64,000 nucleotides of DNA from Geosiphon pyriformis uo1 (GCA_016748015.1 JAAOMT010000088.1:341663-405662), one strand, 5' to 3'. Positions 3,067 to 53,988 are shown, counted from the first letter of the stretch. A program made the numbers and translations. The notes: generated from the sequence alone by a model not told the origin.

Positions 3067-4959
3067 ATGGATTCAAAGACTGTTTCTAGTAGCAGCATGT
3101 CTAATAAGAAGGCTTCTAAGGGTGTGTTTCATGGTCCTGCTGGTGGTTCTTTTTCACAAAAAAAGAAGACTTCTCTTGGTAATATTAAACACTCTGGTGA
3201 TGAAAAGGATATTTCTTTGAAGTCTGGTTCTAGTGTTAGTATATATTCCGATGTAGAAAGCTTTTTTGGTAATAATGAGGATGTCAGTATGTCTGGTGGT
3301 TTTGATGGTTCTCTCTTGGACTCGGCTGTTAACACTCCCAAGGCTAAACGTGTGAATACTAGTGTAAATTTTGGTTCTCCTAACTTTGAGATGGATGAAG
3401 AGGTAAAGCCCCTTCTGCCCCTTCTTATGAAAAAGATTCCTTTGGATAAGATCTGAATCGATTCTAAAATTATCAAAACTCCTGTGAAGGTGGCAGTTAA
3501 GAAATCTTTTGCCTTGGATATCAATCTTTCAGCTGTTGAAGACAATTCGGCAACAGCGAAAACTCGATTAATCAGGAAAATTTTTTCAAAGATCAATGGT
3601 TTTGGGAGGGCCACTACCCTCTCAAAATTTGAAGGGATCATCGGATCAACATTTACATCTGAGGAGAGCATGGAAAAGGCCGCGTCATTGGCCAGGAAAA
3701 ATAACATTATTGTAAACAGCGATCTTAAGAAACAAAGAATATGTTCAGATCGGGCCATAGTAATCAAGGAAATTCCCATGGACATGCCAAAGGAAATGAT
3801 CATTACCGCAGTATCCAAGTTTGGAAAAATTAAGTCGATCAAAATCCAGTTGATTGGTTTATGGCAAAAAGCTGTGGTAGAATTTGCCGAATTGGAACAG
3901 GCTGTGTCTTTGGCTGCTAAGTGGTCCTTCCTGATTGATAAAGACTTGGTTTGTGTGGCTATGGCAGTGGGCAATTGTGAAACTTGGGCATCTAAGGACC
4001 AGTTCAGAGCACTTTTGTTTACTTTACCAGTGGGGACTATTGCTCATGATCTTAGGGATCTTCTTGAAGGGACTGGTGGAAAAACTTGTATCATAAATTG
4101 GTCATTGGAGACTGGTAATAGGGTCCACTGTGCTGTTGTGTGTTTTAATTCTAATAAGGTTTTGGAGTCAGCTTTTCACACGGAACCGATCCTTGGTAGT
4201 GTGAAACTCTCATGGGCTAGGCTGGATTTGGTTCGCTGTGAACGGTATGGGAAGTTTGGTCATTCTGTCTTGGAATGTGATGCTAAGGTTGTGTCAGCTT
4301 TCAAATCTTCAAAGTCTTTTATAAGGCCTACCAACTCTGATACTCGTCTCCAGCTGGCCAAATTGTATGCGAAGAAAAATGTGCCAATCTCTCATCCTGT
4401 TGCCTTTAGTGGCAAATCTTGGGCTCAAGTGGTCTCAGTTGCTTCAGTCTCTCATGGTTTTTGTGCTGGTTTTGGTTCTGGTTCCCCGCCTTCCAGTGAT
4501 GTGAGTTCGGATGAAGTGCTCTCCCCTCTATCTGTGGTCAATTCTCTTTTGAGTGCTCCCTTAGCACTTTTGGAATGCTTTGTGGAGCTTCTGTCTGAAC
4601 AAATTTCGAACATTCTTTCTCGTCTTGACAATATTGGTTCGGCACCCTTGGCGCCTTCCTCTCAATTGGCTCCTTCTGTGGTAGTTCCTTAGTCCCCAAC
4701 CCCTGTTCTTCTTGTGGTTGCAAACCCTGACTTAGATTTTGACATGGCGGTTGATGATTCTTTTGTCCAGCCTACTTTTTTCTCTCCAGGTATTACCAGT
4801 TTGCTATTGGGTCCGAGCAGTTCCAAAGTCCTGACTTCCAAGGTTGGTGGTCTGGAATCAAAGCTGGTTGTTTTCGACATCTCCATTGGTTTGATTTTGG
4901 CTAAGTTGGATCAGTTATGTGCTGGCTCGGGTTCTTTGATTATTTTTTTATCACAATGA
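3067..4959 (+). pseudogene. LINE ORF1 (RRM-like region plus degenerate CCHC knuckle)
   Basis: ORFs 3067, 3484 and 4714 share one frame, broken by two stops (3454 TGA, 4690 TAG). RRM-like segment AIVIKEIPMDMPKEMIITAVSKFGKIKSIKI...AVVEF; knuckle CERYGKFGHSVLEC. Confidence 0.88.
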
Positions 4960-25677: not shown

Positions 25678-27752
25678 TTATTCTTTTTTTTTAATATTAA
25701 GCTCTATTAAAATCTCTTAAATTTCCTAAATTTATACTAATACATAAGTGAAGTTTTAATCTGAATGCAGTTTTTCTTAGATGTTTAAGATTAAATTCTG
25801 TTAGTATTATGCATGTATTTTGGCATAATACTTTTATTATTATTCCTAAATTATTTAAGTTTTTGCTCTTGTAAAAGATCTGGAAGTGTGATATATTGTT
25901 TAAAGTTTTCATTAGAGTTTGAATTGTCATTATTGTTATTATTATTGTAAACAGAGTTGGAATTATTGTTGTTATCATTGTCAGAGTCTGAATTGAGATT
26001 AAATTTTGATTTCAATTTTAAAGTGTAGCTGTTAATTGGTTTTTCTTTTTCAGAAATTGAATAGATTATGTGTGATAATGGATTGTAAATAAGATTACAC
26101 TCATTATAATATTTAAAGTCACTGAAAATTGGGCAATATTTACAAAGTTTAGTGTTTAATTATTCTAAATGCTGCTCTTGTTTTTCTCAAATAGGTGCTA
26201 GATCTTGGTAATAAAGTGGTTTTTTTTGATTCTAATGAGTATAAAATATATTACCCATTATTTGTTTTTTTTGTAAAAGTAGTAACTTGTGGTTTGTCTT
26301 TTTTTTTTTTTTTCTTGTTATTCTATAAGAGTATTGTTGATAGCATATTGTGCTTGTTTTCAGTTTATAAAACTTGATAGACTTTTTAGATAAGTTTCTC
26401 TTTTTCTTTTTCAAACTTAATTAGTGGTAATTAAATAGTAGTGTTTGTTTTAAAGTGGTTACAGATAATAGATATCCAAGTTTGCTGACTATTTCGACTG
26501 AGCTGTAGCTTCTGAGTGTTTTAATTAAGCACAGTATTAGTTTTAAACAGCCAGTTATTACCAATGAGAGCTTGGTACTGTGTAATTTTTATTACCAAAA
26601 ACTTTAATTAGCATAAAAATGCTGTTAACTTTGAAGAAAAAGTTATTGATTTTGTCAATAAAAGTCTTGATTGTTCTATTAGCTGTGATAATTCTGGTGC
26701 TGATAGTACAATTAACTTAATAATCTAGTTGGTTTATAAGTTGTTGTGTAATAATACTGCCTGCTAATTTACTATTAAAGATTAACTTGATAGATTGGCC
26801 ATCAACTTTGATATTTGTGTATATTATGGTAATTGGTTTGGCCTTAAAAGCAGCTCCACTAAATAAAGATGTTATTGCTAATTTTTTTAATTTGAAAAAA
26901 AAATGGCTGCAAGTAATTCATTTTTGATAACTATTACTGATGGAATATTGTTGGTAAGTAGTGTTGAGTTAGATTCTAAATTGTTAGATAAGTTGTTTTC
27001 TGAAGTAACCAAAAGACTTAAATTGTTTTAAGAATTTGGGTTTTGGGTATATCTATTTCCTGAACTTTGCTGATATAATTCTAATAACTGGTTTAATAAA
27101 CTAAAAATTGGTTAGTGCATTACCATTATTGATCTCTAATTTTGCTGAATATAAGTGATTCTTGGTCTTAGATTTTTGATTAATATAAGCATAATAATTT
27201 AGAGTGGTGCTTAAATTTGTTGAAGTTAATAAATTACTTGTAGTTGTAGTTGTTAATAAATAATTAGTGCTAAAATTTAATAAACAGAAGATATGTATAT
27301 TGATTGTTGTGTTATTTGTATATAAAATGGTTGGTATTGTTTCTGATTCTGAATATAATTTGAAGTTTGGAACTAACAAGTGAAGTTTTGATATTAATTT
27401 TTCAATTATTGGTTATTTAATCTTGTATAATAGTTTAATTTTAAGTGTTCTTGTTTACCACAATAGTGGCAGATACATATTTCTTGTTGCTATAATTGAT
27501 TGGCTGATAAAAATGATAAACATGGCTGATTTTAGAAATAATTAGAGTTTCTTTGATCATTATAACATTGTGGAAGTTAATAAATTGTCTAATTGTTAGC
27601 TAAGTATCTTTCAATTTTCTAATTAATATAATGCAAACCATTTATAATCATCAAAAATATAGATTAGTCCGAAATTTTAAATGATGATTTTTATGTGTTT
27701 TTATTTATATAATTAAATTTTATTGGTTAATATACATGTGTTTTTAATATAT

Positions 27753-28420
27753 TGTTACAGTTGAAACTTATACTTTTTATTAATTATCACATATATTAAT
27801 CACTGATGTCACATAAATTAGCCACTCTATTTTTAAAAAGTGATTATTGATCTGATCATTGATTTAGTCATTGACCTGATCATTAACTATTTTTAACAGC
27901 TATATAAATGATGAATCTCTTAACTGTAGAAAATTATGTAGAAATCAAAAAAATCAAATAAATAAAAAAAACAACTTTTATCTCAATCTTTCTCTTATTG
28001 CTAATTTTTCTTTTTCTACCTTTAAGTATCTGAATATTTTAGGATAAAAGATCACTTGTTGGTTATTCCCTACCTTTTTCCTAAAATGTATAATTGCAGC
28101 ATTTGAAGATTATTGAATAAAACATGACTGAAAAGTACATTTAATACTTGATATTGAATTCTAAGAGCACTAATGTGAAACATAGAATTATACCAGTGTG
28201 TAATTATTTGTTGACAGTATAGACTATTTCTCTACTTTCAGATTTCCCAGTTATTTTTGAAAAGTATAGTGACTGAGATATTTTATGAGACTGATTTCAC
28301 ATATTAAATCCATACTTATTCAATTCGCTCTTTGAAATTGAATTCTTTTTGATTTCTTTCATCACCCTACAATTCTGTTTTCTCTTACTATCTGTTAACT
28401 TGTTACTCCAATCTGTAACA
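27753..28420 (+). repeat. E2 5' LTR
   Basis: TGTTAC...GTAACA; direct repeat of 34748-35486. Confidence 0.95.
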
Positions 28421-28426
28421 TAAAAA

Positions 28427-28443
28427 TGGTGCTCCCTGTAAAG
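28427..28443 (+). promoter_or_regulatory. E2 primer-binding site (TGGTGCTCCC...; elongator Met or Ile(UAU) tRNA are candidates)
   Basis: TGG-initiated motif 6 nt after the 5' LTR; decayed versions follow the E1 and E3 5' LTRs. Confidence 0.65.
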
Positions 28444-28472
28444 TTGTCAAAATCCACTTTGTTTCCTATTGT

Positions 28473-30025
28473 ATGGATAATTATTTATACCTGCCACAAC
28501 AATCAGAAAAACACTTTGAAACACACAACAAAAATAATCTAGACTTTATTAAACTCAATCTTTTGTCCTCCTGCTTGATTTGTTTCTCTATTAAAGAACA
28601 ATCCAGCAGACAATTCCAAGACTTTTGGAACTGGTTTCTGAATAAACATTTAGCTGAAACCTATACAGCTTATACAACTTATTACTTTGATCAAGCTTAT
28701 TTTGAAAACAACTTTAAAGAAAAAAACAACAGTATCAATCAGCTTTTATATTCCACAACCTTTGAGCAGCAGCTTCTTAATTTCAAATATTTGAATCATC
28801 AAATCCATATTTGGATTGCTGTTCATCAATCAACTAAAACTTCCTTTGAAACAAAAGAAGAAAGCTATCAAACTGCTCTTGTTTTTGACCTTTTATTAAG
28901 CAAATCAGATTCATCCACATAAACAGTTACCCCTAAACTAATGGCTAATGACCCCATACAACAAAACATTCTGATCGCCCTCCAAAAGATACAAACTGCT
29001 CTAGGGCGAAGAAATAATACCTTACTATCATTATTCAGAGACAATGCACAAGATCCAATTAAATGGTTAGATGACTTTGAAAGAGCTGTTACAGCCAACC
29101 AATATAATAATAAATACAAGTTTCAAATCATTGGTGGCTACTTCCAAGACTCTCCTGCTATCTGGTTTTCACAAAAAACTGATGCTAGTGTTTACCAAAG
29201 AATCATTAGATGGGTACCAACAAATGCTGGAGAAGAAAACACATCTTTTACAACCCAGTTTGAAATTAAATTTAAAACTTCTATCTTAATATTCAAATAG
29301 CATATAAAATTAAAAAAAAGAATCCAAGATTCTGGTAAAGTTGTAACTGAGTATGCCAAAGCAATCAGAAAATTAATCAAGTGAGTAGACTTTGGAAGGA
29401 ACTAGACAGAAAAGCAAAAGATTTATTCCTTTAAAAAAGGATTGAGAACTGATCTTTCCTATGTTTTTTGGTCCCTTCTAGTATTAAAAAACAATCCCAC
29501 AATGCTTATGGTCATTGAACTTGTCCAAAGAATAAAAGACAATCAAAGAATACACCTAAGATTCACACTTCCAGTTTTTGTTCCTGCTCCTGTTATGGCT
29601 TCTGCTCTCCAAATGACTGCTACCTCTTTTGCTGTCCAAATTCAAGACTCAAATGAACAGTTAATAGATAGACTCACAGTTAATCTTGCCTGGTTACTGG
29701 AACTCTTAGCTTAAGCAGTTAAAGAGAATCAACAACTCCAAAGACCCAGATTTAAACCCCATTTTAGTCAGCCTCAGCAGCCCTCTTACCAAAAACAGCA
29801 AAATCATGGCCCACCTGTATGCTACCACTGTGAATTAACTGGATATTTTTTAAAAGATTACAACAATTCTTCTTTGCCATCTCCAGCTCTCAGAAACAAT
29901 GATAATTAAAACAACAGAATCAACAACAACAATGTTTCCAATCAAAAATCTAATCATGCCAACATCAATTTCTTTGGAGAGAATCCCTTAGTTAAAGCCA
30001 CTGTTTATTAGTCTTTAAACTAATA
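28473..30025 (+). pseudogene. E2 gag with long N-terminal extension
   Basis: ORFs 28473, 28941 and 29442 share one frame; FRDNAQDPIKWLDDFERAVTANQY (retrotransposon gag); knuckle CYHCELTGYFLKDY. Confidence 0.85.
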
Positions 30026-30109
30026 AGCACACCTTTAAAGGGTGAAAGTGCAAGCCAACCAAAAAAAAACCTCTTTTATGTCTTTAATCTAACTGATGAT
30101 GATTATGAT

Positions 30110-33100
30110 ATGGATAAACTGGCAATTAACACTTCTGACTTGACAAGAAAAAAAAAGAAAGCCAAAGTTGATTTTGTTTTAGATCTCAACAAAGCCTCAA
30201 CCTCCACTGCTAATAACAATGAACCACCAAAGGCTAAAGTTTTTAAGAATTCTTCAAAGTTGGAATCCCCAGAAATTGTACAAAAATCTGGACCCTATTC
30301 TGTTGTGAAAAATCTTATGAAAACCCCAGCACATATTACTTTTGGCCAGTTAATGACCCATTTATAATTTAGAAAAAATCTTCACAAGTCATTGATTCCA
30401 AAGAAAAAGACACCAAAAACCAACAAATGTTCACACCAAGCTGGACTTGTTGACAATACCAATGTTACCCTTCTTATTTGTAAAGCCCAAGTGGCTGGTT
30501 ATTTCATTGATTTGATCCTGAACAATGGATTATCTGTTAGTATTATTGCCAAACACTTTCTTAAAGCAATTGGCAAAAAGATTGATGAGTCTTTCACTCA
30601 ACCAATGACCAACATACATGGTGACAAGAAAAAAGGTTTGGGCATAGCCAAAGCTATTCCTGTTCACATCAATGGTATTAGCATTGAAACTGATATGGAA
30701 GTATTTAAAGCAAAAGAATACACCATAATTGTTGGCAATGAGTGGCTTAAGAAAACTAAAGCACTACTTGATTATGAACTTTGTGAGCTAACCATCAAAT
30801 GTGGTGAAAAACCCATTGTGGTTAAATATTGCCATTGGACAACTCCTCTAGTACTCAAGCAAAACCAAGAAGAAAAACAATTAAATGAATCAGATGATGA
30901 TAAGAGTGATAAAAAAAAAGATCAAAAAGAACAAGAAAAAACTGCTGAACTTACCTATACTATCTTCACCAGCAATGGCAAGCCACTAGACAATGTTAAA
31001 GCTGACAAAAAAGGAATCATAATAAATGGCAAGCTAATCTGCTGGTCCTATTATAATATCCTCAAAAGAACCTTTGATAGAAAGCCTGACAAAAAAGCAA
31101 AATAAAGTTATTAGTAGCATAGTTCTTGTACCAAATGCTGTGTGATAAATTTTTGTATTCTCTTAGTAATAAATGCAAGTCTTGTCTAATCTATTACAAA
31201 GATTGGGAGCCAATTAGTTTAATACCCTAAGAAGAACTAAAAGAAGTACAGAAGTTCTTTGAAAATAAACCACCTAAAATCTAATTACTAGTTGTAGAAC
31301 AAAAAGAACTTTCTCCTAAAGAAAAAAAAGTGGACATTGAAAATTTGTTAGCTAGGAATAGTCTAGTTATCCCAAAAGAAGGTGATACCCTTAAACAAAC
31401 CCATGTAATACAACACACTATCACCACAAAAAAAACTTGTCCCATCTATTTGAAGTCTTATCAATCCAATTGATGCAATGATGAATTTATCAAGAAAGAA
31501 ATAAACCAGATGAAAGATCTTGGATTCATACAAGAAACCAAGAGTGAATGGGTCTTCCCAGTTGTAGTGGTATCCAAGAAAAGTGGAACCCTATGTTTCT
31601 GTGTTGACTATTACTAATTAAATGCCATCACTATAAAAGACATATATTTATTTTCCAAAATTAATGCAATGCTAGATAAATTCAATGGTGCTGCTTTCTT
31701 TTCAACCATTAACTTAACTGCTGGATTTTGGCAAGTAGAAATGGATCCAAAAAACAGAAAGAAAACCACTTTTATTACCAAGTATGACACTTATGAATTT
31801 ACAGTTATGTCTTTTAGTCTTATTAATACTCCTCCCACCTTTTAACACCTGATAAACAAAGTATTTGAATCAGTAAAAAAAAACTTTGTTCTGGTCTACT
31901 TAGATGACATAATGGTTTATTTAAAAACCTGAAATGAACATCTTAAACATTTGCAGAAGGTTTTTGACCTGCTCAGAAATGTTGATCTTAAGATTAGCCC
32001 AATTAAATCTTTCTTTGGATGTCAATCCACCCAGTTCCTTGGTCATCTTATTACAAAAGATAGAATTTTCCTTGACTCAGTTAAAGTTAAAAAAGTCCAG
32101 AATATTAGACAACCAATGAATGTTCTTGAACTATGCTTTTTCTTTGGTTTGGCCTCTTACTACTGCAAATTCATCAAAGATTTCTCCAAAATTGTCTTTT
32201 CTCTTAATAAGCTATTCAGAAAAAATGTTAATTATTACTGAGACACTCATCAACAAAAAGCTTTTGAAATTCTGAAGGAAAAACTTGTTACTGAACCAAT
32301 TATCAAGCAATCTGATCTGGACCAACCTTTTATCTTCCACACTGATGTATCTGGCTATAAACTTGGTGCTGTTCTTTCACAGAAAATGAAAATAGCAGAA
32401 AACATGCTATAGTATATGTCAGTAAATATTTCACACCAGCAGAAAAGAACTATTCAATTACTGAACAAAAATGCTTAACAGTAGTTTGGACTACTAGTTA
32501 CTGAGATCAATATCTTCTTAGTGCAAAATTCTTAGTGATAACAAATTATCAAGCTCTAATTTGGCTGCACAATAAAAAGAAACTAGAACACAAATAAATA
32601 ACTTACTGAATATTTTACTTGAATGAATTCAATTATAATATTCAACACCACAAAGGAGCAAATTATCAAAATGCCAATGTTCTTTCTAGACTTACCATTC
32701 AGTAATAGTACAATCTTTTAAACCAAACCAACTTAATTATTAGTAAATTTTTCACAAACAAACATAATAATAGACTTGGACAACTACTCTGTCTTAATAA
32801 AATTTTTGGGTAAAGGACAATACCCACTAGAATATACTTGACAGCAAAGAGAACATTTGTGTAAACAATCAAATTTTTATTTGATTTGCCAAAACCAATT
32901 TTACAAAAAAAACAGAAAAGATCCTGACTGCTCCCAAAAAGTCATCAGATTTGAAGAAAAAGAAATTATAATATACAACATACATACTGACCCATTAGCT
33001 AGACACTTTGGAAAAACAAAGACAATTCAGAAAACTTTAGCTTGCTATTATTGGCCTACTTTGGAAAAAGACATTATTAAATACATTAAAACCTGTGATA

Positions 33101-34050
33101 TTTGCCAAAGAAGAGACAAACCCAATTGCAAAGAAGATATCCATCTAATCTCTGTTGGTCAACTATTTAACAGAATTGGTATAGATGTTGTTGGATCTTT
33201 AACAATAACTTCTGATGGCAACAGATACATTATTACAGCTACTGACTATTTTACAAAATAAGTAGAAGCAAAAACCACTCCAGACCAAACAACAGTTTCA
33301 ATAGCCAATTTTATTTATGAAGATATCATTTGCCATTATGGCTGCCCCAAAAAACATTTATCTGATAAAGGAAAAGTTTTTTTCAGTACACTGGTTAAAA
33401 AACTTTGTAGAAAAATGAGAATACATTATAAACTTTCCTCCCCTTATTACTTCCAAACAAATGGCTTAGTAGAACGTTTCAATAGAACACTATGTGAAAC
33501 CCTAGCCAAAACCAGTAAAAAAACAAACTTATGGGACAAAGTACTGTTTTTAGTTTTGTTTGCTTATAGAACTGTAAATTATAACATAACAAGTTATGAA
33601 TCTTTTTATCTGTTCTATGAATACATGACAATATTACCAATAGAAATTAACATTGACACAATATCCTTTGAAGAAATTACAATAAGAAATTACAAAGACA
33701 TTTTGCAAAAAAGACTTGATACTATTCTTGACTCCTTAGTAGAAGCATGAATAATTGCTTTTGAAAAGATAAAACAGTTCCAAGAAAAGCTTAAAAGAAA
33801 GAAAACCTATAAAATACTTTCTTTAAGTGTTGGTAACTTAATATTGGAATACTATTCAGACAAAAACAATGTTTATAGTGATAAATTCTCTAGCCAATAG
33901 AAAGGACTTTTTATAGTCAAAGTTTTGAACAATGGTTCTTATATTCTTCAAGATCAATCCAAAACAATCTTTAATGATCATCTTATTTATGATACATGAC
34001 TCAAGAAATATCATAAACAATCTGATTGGTTGTCTATTGTGGTAATACCG
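30110..34050 (+). pseudogene. E2 pol: aspartic protease, RT, RNase H, integrase
   Basis: DLILNNGLSV (LILDSG), IIVGNEWL, CFCVDY, YLDD, HTD.SG..LGAVL, HTDPLARHFG..YYWP..CDICQ, GIDVVG, NGLVERFNRTL. No chromodomain seen. Confidence 0.92.
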
Positions 34051-34745
34051 ACTTAAATAATCAGCAAAAATCAAGTATAAATAAATGCATTATTCTCAAA
34101 ACAGAGATATTTTCAATTAACATAAACAATTATTTTTTGGATCAAAACATTCAAAATACTTTCTATACTCTTCATAAGTATTGGATCAAAAACTATCCAA
34201 ATGCTACTTTGACTATTGGAAAACAAACTATCATAACTGATAACAGCAAAACATATACTATTAGTAGACCAAAGAAAACTACTACCAGAAGAGAAAAAAT
34301 TGGTAGCAAAATAGATAAATATCTGTTAGAAAGTATAATAGCAGTTATACTCCCACTTTTCAGCACAATTGGAAAAACACTTCAAGAAATCTTACTCATA
34401 AACAAAAACTTATCATATGGAAGACAATTAAAACTTTATGGTTGTCTTGATAAAATTATAGAGAATATGAAACTCATGAAGAAAACAACTTTAGAAATAC
34501 AGACAGAAATTTTGGGCATTATATGATTAGATATCCCAAGAGTTTTAACTATTGCTAAAAGAGCCAAAACTCTAATACAAAGATTTGATCTCTTGGATAC
34601 AAAACTTATTTTGTCTCAAGTATTATATATCCTATCCACAAAAGACTTCAACAAACTAGTTAGCTTTGAGTTAGATAAAACTCTTCAAATAGATTACAAC
34701 ATGAATAGCTTAATTTTGCCAGAGCTTAATCTCTTTGGAGAGGAT
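34026..34745 (+). pseudogene. E2 extra ORF downstream of pol, unknown function (~230 aa, one internal stop)
   Basis: ORFs 34026-34526 and 34593-34778 share one frame and run up to the PPT (GGAGAGGATAA, 34737-34747). Confidence 0.7.
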
Positions 34746-34747
34746 AA

Positions 34748-35486
34748 TGTTATAGTTAAAACTTATAATTTTTATTAATTATTACATATATTAGCCATTG
34801 ATGTCACATAAATTAGCCACTTTATTTTTAGAAAATGATCATTGACTTGATTAATAACCTGACCATTAATCTGATTATTGATCTAATCATTGACTTAATC
34901 AATAACCTGATCATTGACCTGATCATTGACTTAGTTATTAACCTGATTATTGACCACTTTTAACAGTTATATAAGTGATGAATCTCTTAACTGTAGAAAA
35001 TTATGTAGAAATCAAGAAAATCAAATAAATAAAAAAACAACTTTCATCTCAATCTTTCTTTTATTGCTAATTTCCTTTTTTTTACCTTCAAGTATCTGAA
35101 CATCTTGGGATAAAAGATTACTTGTTGGTTATTCTCTACCTTTTTTCTGAAATGTATAATTGCAGTATTTGAAGATTATTGAATAAAACATAACTGAAGA
35201 GTATATTTGATATCTGATATTGAATTCTAAGAATGCTGATGGGAAGCATAGAATTATACCAGTGTGTGATTATTTGTTGACAGTATGGACTATTCCTCTA
35301 TCTTTAGATTCCTCAGTTATCTTTGAAAAGTATAGTGACTGAGATATTTTATGAGACTGATCTCATATATTGAATCTATACTTATTCAATTCACTTTTTG
35401 AAGTTGAATTCTCTTTGATTCCTTTCATTACTCTATAATCCTGTTCTTTCTTGCTATCTGTTAACTTGTTACTCCAACCCGTAACA
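34748..35486 (+). repeat. E2 3' LTR with expanded 12-bp minisatellite (CTGATCATTGAC)
   Basis: 739 bp vs 668 bp for the 5' LTR; the difference is about six extra 12-mers. Confidence 0.95.
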
Positions 35487-35559
35487 ATATTATTTATAAT
35501 AAAAAATAAAATTTTATTAAATTTTATATAATATAAAACCAAATACAGTATTACAAAGT

Positions 35560-37570
35560 TTGAATATTATTTAATTTGTCTAATTCTTTAAGAATATTAT
35601 CTGGAATTTTTCTATGAAATTTATACTTTTTTATAGCATATTCTACTAATTTTTTATAAGACTTTTTCTATAAAAATTTATATAACACCAATATTTTCTT
35701 AAAAATTATCTAATAGTTATTAAAGATACTAATTAAAAACTTTCAGACACTATTCTTTGTAATCTTTTCCATAAATAATCACATTTGTTATGTACATATT
35801 TTTTAGCAGTTCACTAATATCTTTCAATAAAATTTAATTCACAATAAAATTTTGGAAAAAAAATGCATTTATGTTCCATACTTTTGATTAATTTTTTAAT
35901 TGCATTTTTTTGAGCAAAAAAATCAGATTCCAAAGATATTACTCAACATACATAACAAGAAACTTTTGAAGAATCTTTGATTTTTTCTTTGCATTTTTGG
36001 CATTCTAATACTAATTCTTTTGATGACCATTTTCTTTGTTCTATTAATATTTGTTTAATTTTTTTAGGCAATCTTTGAAGTTTTTTATCTGAATATGTTT
36101 CCAAAAAGATTATTAATTGTAATTAATTATCTAATCCAAAAGAAGTATCTTGCATTAATAATTGCTTTCCACCTGGACTTAAATTCATCCTGCTTGTAAT
36201 TAAAGCATCTTTATTAAATGCTGCATGATTAGAGCTATTATTAAAAACAAATACAATTGTACAATCCAGATATAATTTTTTAAAAATTGGAATTGCTTTA
36301 CATTTAATTTGTTTAAGAAAATGGTTTGCTGTCCAATAATCATTTTGATTTATACCAGTTTGCAAATAGCATTGTGTTTCTTCTAGTATATTAGAATAGT
36401 TTTTTATATCATTTTGTTGTAAACATAAAAATCAATTAATTTTAGTTAGAAATTTATTGACCATAATTGATCTTACATTTTTTTTTTCTTAGTAGCAAAT
36501 TTTCATGCTCAGTTCATATGTCATGCTTGTCATTATTTGAATAAAAAATGCATTTATCATGGACTATAAGAATTCTTTCTTTCTTTTTATTAAGTAAGTT
36601 GAAACATATTTGATCTATAAATTCACTTTTATACTTTAACATATACTTTTTATGCTCATATATTTTTTTTAAAAATTCTTTTCAAGATTACAAGATGTCA
36701 TTTTTTTCATGTCTATTATAATATAAGTCTTAATAATATTGTTAGAATGAATAACCAAGAATTTTAAGCCATCTTACTGTAGTTATAAAACAAATAGTTT
36801 TTTCCTTTATTATTTCAATATTGGAAAATAATTCATGTTCAATGAATTTTTTAAATGTGGCTGGAGTGTTATTGAAGTTTTGGTTTTTAATTTAAATATA
36901 ACATCTTTCTATAATGTCTTTATCATCAATTATTCTTATCATTTTTTGGTGTTTTCTATGTTTTGATGTTAAAAACTTATTATTAAGCAACCAATACTTT
37001 GCAAGATATCAAATTTTTCTTGCTTTTCATATACTATTATTAATAAAAACTTTTTGGACAATTTTCAAACTGGCATTAATTTTTCCATGTCTATTATTAT
37101 TATTTAACAAGATAAAATATTCAAAAATAACTCTTTTTTGATTATATTTGAAAACAGTTAACTGAACATATTGTTTTTCTAAATGTTCTTTTAACTCTTG
37201 TTATTTTTTTATTTGACTAGCATACAGATCAACCATACTTTCTGAATTGTTTGAAGATTTATTAAATTTGGGCCATTGTAAGTCTGTAGTTTGAGCATCA
37301 TTAATATTAAAGAAAGTGGTAATTTTTTTAGTTCTGGCTGCTGCTTTGATAAAATAATTATTTGGTCTATATTTATTATAATAGATTGACTTTGGTATTT
37401 TTTTTGTTATATAAGAGCCTCATTTTTTTTAGATGATTGTTATTTTTCTATATTAAACTAAGTTTTTTTAAATTTGTATTTATTCTAATTGTGGCTTTTA
37501 TATCTTTTGTATCATTCTATCTACTGTTATCATCATCATTCTACTCTTTATTACTAATATTCAGTCTGTT
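35560..37570 (-). pseudogene. DDE transposase of the IS630-Tc1-mariner type (degenerate)
   Basis: ILIVHDKCIFYSNN (HDE, first D), YWTANHFLKQIKCKAIPIF...FVFNNSSNHAAF.KDAL..SRMNLSPGGKQ (FDNS, second D), PKFYCELNFIERY (E). Ends approximate. Confidence 0.85.
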
Positions 37571-37878
37571 AAATTCATTTACTTCAATATTATGATTATT
37601 TATTAAAGTGGTATAATGTGTTTTTTTATATAATTTTTTTGTATTTCTAACTTGATCTTTAGCTTTTCTTTTTTCTTTAAAATAAAGTAGTATTTTTTTA
37701 TATGATGTAATATTAATCTAGTGTGTAATTGGTACTTGGACAGAATTAAAGGATTTGAACCATGTAATGTTGTACAACAAAGTTGTATCACAATAGAAAT
37801 GGCATTTTTAACTCAGATATATATCTATTCTTTGAATCTTTTTGGTTTTAATTTAAACTTTAATTTTTGTTTTGTAGT

Positions 37879-39220
37879 TCTGAATAAAAAACAATCAAAA
37901 AAAACTCTTTTGGTATTCATTAAAAAAAATTTTTTATTGAAATTAGGGAGATTATCTGAGCCGAAAATTCAAGTAACATTAATAAAAATAGTTACTACAA
38001 AATTTTTTTTAACTTATAACAAAAAATTTGGGCAAAAAAATCTAATATTAATAATTGAATAATCAACTCAAAAAAAACCTGATTTTTAAATTAAAGCTGA
38101 TTTCTTAAAGCTAATGAAAGATTTATTGCAAATAATTGTTAATTAAAAAAATAATAAGTAAGAATATTTGAGATAGATTTCAATTTTAGTATTATAGTTT
38201 AGTTGTAATTTCTTATTTTCATATTCAGGAGTTGACAATATGCTGAATTATTTATGAATTTACTGTTTAAAGAAAAATATTCAGAATATTATGATGTGAT
38301 TAAAAAGCCAAGATTCTTAAACATAATTAAAATTGATACTATGCACTTTTTTCTTATTAGTCACTTAATACTTGACATATGTTTTCTATATTACATCAAT
38401 AAAAAATTTGAAAAAAATATTATCTATTTATGAATTTGATCAGGACTTGCAATTGATTTCAAAAATGCCATGTATTTTAATAATAATTTATGCATTTTTA
38501 AAGATGCCAAATTCTTATAAATAAGAAGTTTATTAGATCTTTACAAAAAAATCTTGGTTTTATCTACTTAAACTAATATATTTTATACATTTTTTGCATC
38601 AAAACAAACTTATTAGAAAATGTACAACATTAACAAAAAAAAGCTATTCAAGATTATAGGCTTTAAGACAATTTCAGTTTTCTCAATTAAAGTAAAGCCA
38701 AAGATTTTTCAATTTTAATTTAATTTTTCTAAATTAACACCAACTGATATAAGTTTTTTGATTATTGTAATAAGCTATTATATATCACATTCTAATAAAT
38801 TGTTGAAATATTCAACAATTGAAATTCTTTTTATAGTCTAGGAAACCAATTCTAAAACTAAATTATAATTTAATCAAATACACAATAGGTATTTTAGTCA
38901 TTATATTTCTCTTTGGTATAATTTATTATTCAAATATTAAATTTAACCAGAAACTTTTATTACAAAAAATTTTGTATATCTCTTAGATCCAAGCAATTTT
39001 TTAAAATACAACATTATAGTCATTGAAAGATTATTTATGAATTTAAAATAAGTATTCATATTATAATAATACAAGATTACAAATAGAATACAAATGATAT
39101 TTTCAAATTCTTTAACAATTACTCATAGTACTTTTATAATTCTTTTGATACTTGATGTGAACAATATTAATATCTGAATTTTTGTCCCAATAATAATAAC
39201 CGAATATGGTGGTAGTGTAA
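37879..39220 (+). pseudogene. Intron-containing bromodomain protein gene carried inside the DNA transposon
   Basis: Exon ~37879-38157, intact GT-AG intron 38158-38228, exon 38229-38331, decayed intron, exon ~38403-38520 give LMKDLLQIIVN*KNNK/S*QYAELFMNLLFKEKYSEYYDVIKKPRFLNIIK/...EFDQDLQLI(F)KNAMYFNNNLCIFKDAKFL. A protein-like frame continues to ~39220. Confidence 0.82.
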
Positions 39221-41162
39221 ATAAAATATTTATGGTTAATAATACCATATTATCAGCAGAAAACATACAGGCTGAGAGATATTATATTTTTATAAAAAAG
39301 TGATCATCTAAAGATTAAATTAATATTAATTGAAAGCTTTTCTGAAAATGATAATATTTTGATAATTTATCATATGATAACATAATTTAAATAATTGTTA
39401 ATTGGTTAAAATCTAATTGATTGACATCTGAAAATTAAAAATTAATAATAAAAGTGGCTAATTTTAAACTTTAATAACTTTATAAATTATAATATAATTC
39501 AAAAAATTAAATTGTAAATATAAAAAAAAAGAACTTAATCTATTATATTTATGGTTTAATTTTTTAATATTATTAAGATTAAAAGACTAAATACAATTTA
39601 AAATTATATAAATTGTTTGATGACTATAAATAGTTTATATCATAGCTTTACCAAATTGCTTTAATTTGGTATTTAATTCAGATAATCTATTTATTATTAG
39701 GTTAACAACTTGAACATAATTGGTTTCAAGTTCAACCAATTTAAAATTTTTGGCATGTGTAATTGTATTTTAAAGAGTATTTGAGTGCATTGAACATACT
39801 TATTATAATAAGCTGTTGTATAATCCACAAATAAACTGGTTTAAAATCTGTGCTTTAGTAAAATAGTCAGCTTGAATTGCCTAAATTTGGCACAAATTCT
39901 TGTGAAAATGTTTTAAGTAAGTAGTAACTACTTCAGTATCATCTTGTTTAATTGTAGTGAGACTAATTAACAAGTAATTTAAACTATTATTATTGCTAAA
40001 ATAACATAAAAATGTGGTTTTAAATGCATTAAAATCTTGAGATTTGTTTACAAGATTTTAATACCATAAGTTGGCAGTGTTTTAAAGAAAGTAAAAGATG
40101 GCTTGAATTACTTTAGTGTTATCTTATCTGTTGGTTGTAATGGTTTTTTTTATGTCATTTAGCCATACTTGAGTATTGTTCTCTTTGCAAGTAAATTATT
40201 CTAGTTTGGCAATTAGTACATATGTTATTAGTGCAAGTTGTTATTATTGTTAAAGTTGTTATTGTAGTACAACAATTGGTGCAACTAACAGATTGATCAC
40301 AATAATTAAAAGTAAGTTTTGCTAAATAATAAGAGTGAAATTTAAATTGTTTGAGTTTTGTAAAGTTTAAACAATCAGAGTTTGTATTTTTAGATTATTT
40401 AAAATTAAGATTTGATTATTATTTTCCTGATTACTGTTTTTTTTTTCTTCTGAATTGATATTTCTCCAACAACTAGTAAATCCAATATCTAATTAAGATA
40501 GCAATAATCAAAGTTTTAATAGTGTTGTTGGTCATGATTTAAATTTTTCAAAATAATTGCTATAAATTCCTAATAATTTGGCTTTTTCTTGATTATTTTG
40601 GAACAAAACTTGAGATAATGGTGTTTTTGTAATTGATAATAATATAAATCTTAATAGTATATATATAGTATTTTTTGGTGTATAATAGTATAATAAGTAA
40701 ATAAATGAAATAATTCTTGGTTTTTTTTAAGTAGACAGTTGTATTTTTCTTAATGTTTTTGTTAGTGTTTATAATTTTTTTTTGTCTGTAAAGGTAATAA
40801 AAAGTCTTTATTAAGTGTAATTTTCAATTTTTCTGTTTATTTTTGTGATTAATAACACAAACAAATAGTTTGGTAGAAGTGTGGTGCTTTGGAATAATTC
40901 ATTGTAAAAATTGTTAAGAGTAGTTTTTGGATCTTTTTGGTTTTTTAAGTAGAATTTAATTTTTTGGTTAACATAGTAATTGAAAACTAATTCTGTTAAC
41001 CAATAGTTACTTGTCAGTCTAAGATAAATTTAGTTATGTTAAAATAAGAATTTCACAAATTCCAAATGATTTTTTTTTATAATTTTTTAATCTGCCACTT
41101 TGCTAAATAATTGATATTAATGTTAGTTCTCTGTTAAATTATATTTTATAAAGAGCATCAAA

Positions 41163-52839: not shown

Positions 52840-53430
52840 ATGCAAGCTACAATTCTTCCTCCAATCAAGTTTCTTCTTGACTCTCCCATCGATAATGGTC
52901 ATGGTAAGCTTCTTTTTCTTTTCTAATCTAAAAAAGTCAAAACATCTGGAAAATTTTCTCATTCTAATTATCATTTTATTCTTATTACAGCGACCGATTA
53001 TCTTGCTCATTCATCTAGCTCTCATCCGTTTTCTTCGAATTGTTCATCACCCCTTACCTCATCCCCTCCAATTACTCCTTTATCAACCTCTTTCCGTCTT
53101 CCCTCAATGACTCATCCCAACAAACCATCCCCATTGAGTTTAAGCGGAATTTCTAATGGATATCAAAATACTATTCGATCTCTTATCTCACCCCCAAAGT
53201 CACCTGAATCTTCACCTATTTCTAATTATTTCGATCATTATGGAACCCAGCAAGTTTCTCCTCAAGAAAATCATCAAGAACAACCAAATCGATATTCAAC
53301 TTCCCAACCACAATATAATCCTTACCCAGCTTACACTTCTGCCATTAAACCAAGCAACTTATATCCTTCAATGATCACTTCAAGACCTCAAGAGCATTAT
53401 CATAGTTATTCTCATCACAATCATCATCAT

Positions 53431-53462
<32 letters not shown>

Positions 53463-53500
53463 ACAACATCATCATCAACACCAACAACAACAACAACACC

Positions 53501-53543
<43 letters not shown>

Positions 53544-53988
53544 GCAGCAACAACAGCAATTCATTTCGCAACCTATCCCCCATCATTCTCAATCTTTGAG
53601 ACAGTCACATTGTTTACAATCAAATCCATTATCCCCATTTGATAATCGTAATACCTCAGTCGTTAAGCGCATGACCATACCTAAATCACTTATCGATGAT
53701 CAAACATCTTCCTCCTCATCAAATGCCAACCGTTATCAATGCCCATATTGTTCCAAACGATTCTCCCGCCCAAGTTCCCTTCGCATTCACACATATTCCC
53801 ACACTGGTGAAAAACCATTCATCTGTACAGAACCAGGTTGTGGACGAAAATTTTCTGTACAAAGTAACATGAGACGACATTTAAGAGTTCATCGATTGGG
53901 TCGACCAGTTAAAAAGGTTCGATATGATGGTGAAGTTGAAGGTGTTAAGGTACACATGATTCCTGCCTCAGTTTTACGGACGTGTTAA
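52840..53988 (+). CDS. Two-finger C2H2 zinc-finger transcription factor with polyQ/H tract (~353 aa)
   Basis: Exon 1 52840-52903 (MQATILPPIKFLLDSP...), GT-AG intron 52904-52990, exon 2 52991-53988 in frame with ORF 53107; fingers YQCPYCSKRFSRPSSLRIHTYSH-TGEKP-FICTEPGCGRKFSVQSNMRRHLRVH. Confidence 0.93.
53430..53559 (+). repeat. (CAA)n/(CAT)n coding microsatellite (polyQ/H)
   Basis: Directly visible. Confidence 0.95.

Follow-up and report, generated by a model that had tools for sequence, protein, structure and literature searches.

The genome assembly of Geosiphon pyriformis uo1 (GCA_016748015.1; 128 Mb, 792 contigs) contains, within a 64,000-nucleotide stretch of JAAOMT010000088.1 (341663-405662), a DNA transposon with two genes between its ends. 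This whole stretch is referred to as the window, and positions are counted from its first base. One gene, on the minus strand, corresponds to a transposase of the Tc1/mariner type. The other, here called the cargo, is a multi-exon gene on the plus strand, head-to-head with the transposase and extending from about 37793 to 39300, in which part of a bromodomain is encoded. An earlier reading of the window made from its sequence alone (the sequence-only reading) had recognised such a head-to-head gene at ~37880-39220. Collinear matches to the cargo are found at a host locus elsewhere in the assembly, which was the genome searched for copies and homologues, and point to a captured host gene.

A two-gene transposon and its family

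The element is bounded by 27-bp terminal inverted repeats (TIRs), with a TA dinucleotide beside each (Table 1). Among the 579 AT-rich inverted repeats of the 64-kb window, this pair comes no higher than 17th. Such a rank is unremarkable, so that the proof of the ends rests on the other copies. The termini of different copies (n = 27) all read TA followed by TGGTGCAAACCATTTATA(A/G)TCATCAAA, beside unrelated flanks, and every copy sampled carries the 27-bp consensus at its two ends. A transition-tolerant search with the TA and TIR pattern identified 69 + 70 = 139 matches in the genome, against 0 + 0 for the reversed control. Each half of the element matches more than 40 scored genome places among 114-120 candidates (83-90% identity), and the two halves adjoin in every case. 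The copy number of the family is roughly 60-70 or more. The ~27-bp TIRs and the TA target-site duplication (TSD) proposed in the sequence-only reading are thus those of a real family. Its single span of 27629-39642 holds for the ends and not for the interior, ~7.7 kb of which (27757-35486) belongs to a nested retroelement.

In the other copies, fetched with their flanks, the sequence corresponding to 27627-27756 is continuous with that corresponding to 35487-39644, which gives the window copy a native length of 4.26 kb. Native elements measure 4.3-4.8 kb, the full form being ~4.8 kb long and the window form a 4.26-kb deletion derivative. The nested retroelement exhibits long terminal repeats (LTRs) in direct orientation at ~27749-28420 and ~34744-35486, which differ by 65 transitions to 1 transversion. 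It carries RVP_2 and Integrase_H2C2 domains (Pfam) in broken, heavily mutated open reading frames (ORFs). The window copy of the transposon is itself embedded in another, older repeat (flanks 27001-27618 and 39648-40232). Two paralogues of this flanking repeat (L025 1246-2464; L038 1220-2673), 67-71% identical, are uninterrupted at the insertion point; being diverged paralogous empty sites, they match the element boundaries within ~3 bp and cannot fix the TSD. Pairs of family ends merely 0.75-1.26 kb apart also exist, some of them overlapping short matches to cargo fragments, so that non-autonomous derivatives were mobilised too.

A de-mutated consensus was derived from 23 copies by reading mixed C/T positions as C and mixed G/A positions as G. 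Pairwise identity between copies is ~87%, in a star-like pattern, and transitions exceed transversions ~15:1. Relative to the consensus, individual copies have lost 17-45% of their C/G to T/A, on both strands equally. Reverse transitions amount to 0.1-0.4%, and transversions to ~0.3-0.5% in most copies. The loss of C/G stands at 35% both in the transposase and in the exons of the cargo, and at a nearly equal 32% in the introns of the cargo. Since the decay is almost exclusively C>T/G>A, reverting those transitions is justified; the sequence-only reading, which had reverted no other changes, was right in this respect. All copies examined are dead, having been inactivated later by this heavy mutation. 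A ciliate genetic code was tried as an explanation of the stop codons and rejected, since AT-rich DNA is all open under that code and standard-code ORFs occur elsewhere in the window.

The consensus restores a single stop-free transposase frame of 724 codons. Natural copies contain 9-25 in-frame stops in this gene, and the window copy 20. The DDE transposase that the sequence-only reading placed on the minus strand at ~35560-37570 is therefore present, with a slightly wider extent. A natural 215-amino-acid (aa) piece of it matches 1813 cluster representatives at E<=0.001, and one relative is named by its source as Scutellospora calospora. A family-copy piece scores 21.1 bits against DDE_3, under the cut-off; in full-length relatives the DDE_3 match is C-terminal and in some of them exceeds the cut-off (30.8-37.3 bits). 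An intact natural relative (P0001, 646 aa), 52% identical to the family consensus over 612 residues, was modelled with AlphaFold2 (AF2) from a 35-sequence alignment (mean pLDDT 82.5), and the fold was read on this model, not on the broken family copies. Its best match in the PDB is the Mos1 mariner transposase (E 7e-5), followed by the catalytic domains of Sleeping Beauty and Metnase (TM-score by target 0.58-0.65).

Because of the TA duplication and the predicted Mos1/Sleeping Beauty/Metnase-like fold of the relative, we place the family in the IS630-Tc1-mariner superfamily, as an unusually long member. Together with the 27-bp TIRs and the DDE_3-related transposase, these features uphold the Tc1/mariner-like identity originally proposed. 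The element shares with Mos1, Sleeping Beauty, Tc1 and Tc3 the TA duplication, the short TIRs, the cut-and-paste architecture and a DDE_3-related transposase. It differs from them in three respects. First, its transposase, at 724 aa, has about double their length. Second, the putative catalytic residues read from its motifs (D389, D495 and E629) would be spaced by ~106 and ~134 residues, a departure from the canonical DD34E/DD34D/DD37D. Third, a second, multi-exon gene lies within the TIRs.

Exons and domains of the cargo

The cargo was searched exon by exon. A short spacer, which may be a promoter, separates its frame from the divergent transposase frame (Table 1). Exon E1b comprises 93 codons in the consensus and ends in the first helix of the bromodomain. 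The intron that follows had been predicted in the sequence-only reading, and its GT..AG borders and its joining of the frames are both confirmed. A second intron separates bromodomain exons a and b. Further downstream lie putative linker exons, then two exons that probably start a BAH domain, and finally the C-terminal exon. This last part of the gene is interrupted by a 537-bp deletion, whose ends are the same in 15 of 22 copies including that of the window. The block is kept in the other 7 copies (7/22), where it encodes ..FFFRPDQ / TEHNLFLKFYEKEVFKTS.., followed by the 142-codon C-terminal frame. Genome-wide, exon a is present in ~58 copies and the BAH exon is kept in ~37 places; natural ORFs of 127-134 aa persist for the C-terminal exon in other copies. 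The TIRs were expected to accompany the gene elsewhere in the genome, and they do: the cargo lies inside them in all autonomous copies sampled.

Domain matches were judged by the Pfam cut-offs of 21.7 bits (PF00439, Bromodomain) and 30.8 bits (PF01426, BAH). Exon a scores 23-24.3 bits in five copies and 25.8 bits in copy L007 against PF00439, over model positions 10-43 only. Its PDB matches are to polybromo-1 (five domains, E 7e-13) and to RSC4 (E ~1e-6). The RSC/polybromo-type bromodomain of the sequence-only reading is accordingly recovered in exon a of sister copies, some of which pass the PF00439 check that it proposed; the window copy's own bromodomain ORFs exhibit no Pfam match. The second bromodomain half alone has no match in Pfam or the PDB, profile search included. 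A complete four-helix bromodomain with the acetyl-lysine-binding asparagine does not exist in a single frame: the asparagine segment (FxNAMYFN..IFKDAKFL) and the preceding EFDQDLQLI segment are one base out of frame in 22/22 aligned copies, all of equal length there. For this reason the reconstructed peptide of the sequence-only reading does not survive. Its stretch ...DLQLIFKNAMYFN... requires a 1-nt frame change absent from the DNA of every copy, and its reading as LQLIFKNAMYFN silently bridges the frameshift common to all 22. Nor does the gene prove intact in the multi-copy consensus.

The same reading had found no BAH domain and a small stand-alone protein, whereas the cargo of the family runs on into probable BAH exons and the C-terminal exon. 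Against PF01426, the first BAH exon matches positions 2-33 (15.3 bits, E 0.019) and the 537-bp block of copy C563 matches positions 48-95 (16.2 bits, E 0.75). Both are below the cut-off, and the two weak matches stand in the correct order along the cargo. A profile of the first BAH exon exhibits no PDB match. The C-terminal exon has no match in Pfam or the ESM Atlas, and the public proteins matching it are only from Geosiphon pyriformis (NCBI naming). The 5' exon exhibits neither a bromodomain match nor, in Pfam, support for an HMG-like domain, and it is absent from the 5.8 billion predicted proteins searched.

The cargo thus resembles RSC1/RSC2 and polybromo in the type of exon a (F..LP....YPEYY..I..P) and in the order of bromodomain and probable BAH. 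It differs from RSC1/RSC2 in having a single, frameshifted bromodomain and a sub-cut-off, probably incomplete BAH; the layout of two bromodomains followed by BAH is not that of the cargo but is seen at the host locus described below. Elsewhere in the genome, a bromodomain at C340:143555-143816 (28.2 and 30.6 bits) is split by a ~65-bp intron at the same model position (~45) as that of the cargo. It is dissimilar to cargo exon a in the protein search and probably belongs to a separate host gene.

A host locus, a sister element and the fate of the cargo

Besides the family copies, the exon-wise protein searches of the genome identified one outside locus, on the minus strand of contig C728. Its four matches are collinear with the cargo, on the same strand and without internal stops (Table 1). 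Two bromodomains were recognised at this locus, the upstream one at 65 bits and the other at 45.8 bits, together with a weak match to BAH. Judged by these domain matches, C728 has the layout of RSC1/RSC2, two bromodomains and a BAH, which is that of conserved subunits of fungi. No family transposase was found near it. The 5' exon of the cargo has no match at C728 and is unrelated to the host locus, and ~1 kb lying between the BAH and C-terminal exons at C728 is apparently lacking in the cargo.

The collinearity bears on whether the bromodomain could be a chance product of AT-rich decay, with no captured gene at all. Such a reading would explain why the ORFs of the window copy have no Pfam match and why the second bromodomain half and the BAH are never significant alone. 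It is scarcely credible in the face of Pfam matches above the cut-off in several independent copies, the polybromo-1 match in the PDB, and four collinear matches to a locus with two Bromodomain scores well above the cut-off.

A related element in another Glomeromycotina assembly (GCA_001593125.1, L044) aligns to positions 619-2101 (transposase) and 4622-4779 (right subterminal region) of the family consensus. The two aligned regions are 482 bp apart in L044, against 2521 bp in the Geosiphon family, ~2 kb between them being missing; this sister element is thus without the cargo. No cargo was found beside the related transposases of contigs L041, L042, L043 and L045, the relevant side of L042 ending at the contig edge. 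The collinear locus C728 and the cargo-less L044 together suggest that host genomic DNA, introns included, was captured by a formerly single-gene element. The sequence-only reading had left two options, a captured host fragment or an accessory factor. The former is favoured by the C728 collinearity, by the cargo-less sister and by the amplification of a truncated cargo; the latter fits less well.

We also considered the reverse direction, in which the C728 gene, or part of it, would be a domesticated transposon-borne gene. The open matching exons of C728 and the lack of a transposase nearby are what a domesticated remnant would show. This direction is nevertheless very improbable, given that C728 exhibits the complete two-bromodomain and BAH layout conserved in fungal RSC1/RSC2 while the transposon has only its 3' part, and that L044 is without the cargo.

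The fate of the cargo after capture is read from its shared lesions. The frameshift in 22/22 copies, set against the intact transposase consensus built from the same copies, indicates that the copies examined descend from an ancestor in which the bromodomain frame had already been disrupted. The deletion common to 15 of the 22 indicates that a truncated cargo did not stop amplification. The mobilised short derivatives and the nearly equal C/G loss of transposase, cargo exons and cargo introns also speak for a passenger. We consider it probable, with some reservation, that the cargo is a host-gene capture carried as a passenger, and that it was not an acetyl-lysine reader while the family amplified. 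Both the host-to-transposon direction and the absence of a cargo function are what we infer from these comparisons.

Several observations weigh against this view. Protein identity between C728 and the cargo, measured on mutated copies, is only 51-79%, which means that the capture is old or that C728 is not the direct donor. The BAH never reaches the Pfam cut-off, and the consensus of the 537-bp block comes from 7 copies only. No autonomous copy sampled lacks the multi-exon cargo. The cargo has a tidy divergent layout and a separate 5' exon, ATG included, for which C728 offers no match. Frameshift apart, the consensus leaves most cargo exons open, as well as the C-terminal frame of 142 codons, so that the gene is more intact than expected of a long-dead passenger.

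These observations lend themselves to a different account, in which the cargo was a selected accessory bromodomain-BAH reader, serving to target acetylated chromatin or to counteract silencing, and the master lineage acquired the frameshift and the deletion only a short time ahead of the final burst. The constant presence of the cargo (~58 copies with the bromodomain exon), its separate 5' exon and ATG, its head-to-head position ~75 bp from the transposase frame and its mostly open frames would all agree with this, and its considerable divergence from C728 speaks for a history of its own. We regard this account as possible but unlikely. The frame is broken in every aligned copy while the transposase consensus is fully open, ~1 kb of the C728 gene is apparently missing from between the BAH and C-terminal exons, the truncated form reached many copies, no cargo was found beside the related transposases of four other contigs, and the 5' exon occurs in none of the 5.8 billion predicted proteins. 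That the cargo was formerly functional at all seems to us rather doubtful. The more specific proposal, that a Tc1/mariner-type element once encoded its own bromodomain and BAH reader, derived from an RSC-like gene, for selecting acetylated, open chromatin or withstanding silencing, is a speculation that we hold to be unlikely.

If the cargo is a captured passenger, the following history may be proposed. A Tc1/mariner ancestor would have taken up a ~2-kb genomic segment, introns included, of a chromatin gene resembling RSC1/2, with the second bromodomain, a portion of the BAH domain and the C-terminal exon. The insert would have come to lie head-to-head with the transposase, in the interval from the 5' end of that gene to the right subterminal region. 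This composite would then have amplified to its present ~60-70 or more copies, also yielding deletion derivatives such as the 4.26-kb form. Heavy C>T/G>A mutation subsequently inactivated all copies, and an LTR retroelement split the window copy.

Table 1. Positions of the transposon features in the window, of the cargo matches at the host locus on contig C728, and of short derivatives of the family
Feature	Position	Strand	Remarks
Left TA target-site duplication	27627-27628		TA precedes all sampled termini beside unrelated flanks
Left 27-bp TIR	27629-27655	+	Family consensus TGGTGCAAACCATTTATAATCATCAAA; 2 transitions in window copy
Left arm of transposon	27629-27756	+	Severed from remainder by nested insertion
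Nested Ty3/Gypsy-type LTR retroelement	27757-35486	+	Not part of transposon; absent from all other copies
Transposase pseudogene	35554-37717	-	Family frame 724 codons; motifs HDEC / FDNSSNH / HCELNFIERYW
Spacer between divergent transposase and cargo frames	37718-37792		~75 bp; consensus coordinates mapped to window
Cargo 5' exons	37793-38157	+	ATG 37793, putative small intron, exon E1b 37877-38157
Intron GT..AG	38158-38228	+	Direct sequence reading; joins frames in consensus
Bromodomain exon a	38229-38331	+	Pfam positions ~11-43: ..F..LP....YPEYY..I..P..L..I
Bromodomain exon b, two frames	38402-38520	+	..IYEFDQDLQLI 38402-38458; FxNAMYFN..IFKDAKFL 38452-38520; 1-nt frameshift ~38455-38458
Two short putative linker exons	38617-38691, 38698-38748	+	Open consensus frames with GT donor sites
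Probable BAH start, two exons	38837-38887, 38965-39048	+	..VEYTIG / DFVYLLDPS..IIVIERLF
537-bp deletion junction	39068-39069		Removes BAH core exons and first half of C-terminal exon
C-terminal exon remnant	39069-39300	+	142 codons in consensus
Right subterminal non-coding region	39301-39615	+	Conserved among copies; consensus stretch 73% identical to cargo-less sister L044
Right 27-bp TIR	39616-39642	-	4 transitions in window copy
Right TA target-site duplication	39643-39644
Exon a match	C728:297982-298116	-	53%, E 4e-8; alignment extends into cargo intron
Exon b match	C728:297808-297888	-	62%, E 0.005; within open 59-codon frame
BAH exon match	C728:297042-297125	-	79%, E 6.5e-9; within open 88-codon frame; overlaps weak BAH match of C728
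C-terminal exon match	C728:295558-295941	-	51%, E 3.5e-33; full length; open 151-codon frame
Short-derivative examples	C354:70589-71443, C651:859322-860579, C657:200543-201801, C544:175395-176265		Keep cargo fragments

Decay and wider significance

The decay of the family resembles repeat-induced point mutation (RIP) of ascomycetes in that the changes, on either strand of the repeats, are almost all C>T/G>A. It differs in lineage, Geosiphon belonging to the Glomeromycotina, and in sequence context, which is CpG-first (CpG 57% > CpC 37% > CpA 32% > CpT 26%) and not CpA. RIP signatures were stated as not detected in Gigaspora margarita, an arbuscular mycorrhizal fungus (PMC8647823). Deamination of methylated cytosine may be an alternative to RIP as the mechanism. 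Whether Glomeromycotina possess a RIP-like genome defence is a question to which the decay seen in this transposon family, and in the nested LTRs, is relevant.

Some further observations concern individual copies and the surroundings of the element. Short derivatives exhibit ~1.2 mutated positions per end versus ~2.8 in long copies (a rough hand count); either a younger age or a length dependence of the mutation process may account for this. A family copy at C689:580053-583376 exceeds most copies in its identity to the natural queries (transposase piece 86%, C-terminal exon 80%). Open frames of 1098 and 884 codons are reported for it, which may reflect an unusually well-preserved copy or may arise artificially from masked N positions. 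Copies C683, C686 and C472 are among the least mutated. Within the window, the segment 3457-9800 has ~40% GC, far above its surroundings, and long open frames with RRM and reverse transcriptase domains; it is probably a non-LTR retroelement largely spared the C>T decay. A 353-codon ORF with C2H2 zinc fingers at 52927-53985 is apparently an ordinary gene.

Capture of host genes by DNA transposons is established for the Pack-MULEs, CACTA elements and Helitrons of plants. The present family is like these cases of transduplication in that an intron-bearing fragment of a host gene lies between the ends of an element, amplified and partly degenerate. It is unlike them in its carrier, an autonomous fungal element of the Tc1/mariner type in which transposase and fragment form one unit. 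To our knowledge, Tc1/mariner elements are otherwise single-gene transposons, and the documented gene captures known to us are mainly those of plant Mutator-like, CACTA and Helitron elements. A narrow search of the literature, which is not proof of absence, returned no DNA transposon carrying a bromodomain or BAH fragment. The chromoviruses, Ty3/Gypsy elements with an integrase chromodomain, are likewise mobile elements that encode a chromatin reader. Their chromodomain is, however, fused to the integrase and functional, whereas the module described here is a separate, divergent and frame-broken gene in a DNA transposon.

Should the cargo ever have been functional, no earlier example of a bromodomain-BAH reader borne by a transposon is known to us. 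In the family described here, an autonomous mariner-type element in a genome of Glomeromycotina type carried ~2 kb of a multi-exon chromatin gene through dozens of transpositions. Gene capture is thereby extended to another transposon superfamily and to another kingdom, and the family provides a dated, countable example of domain shuffling.

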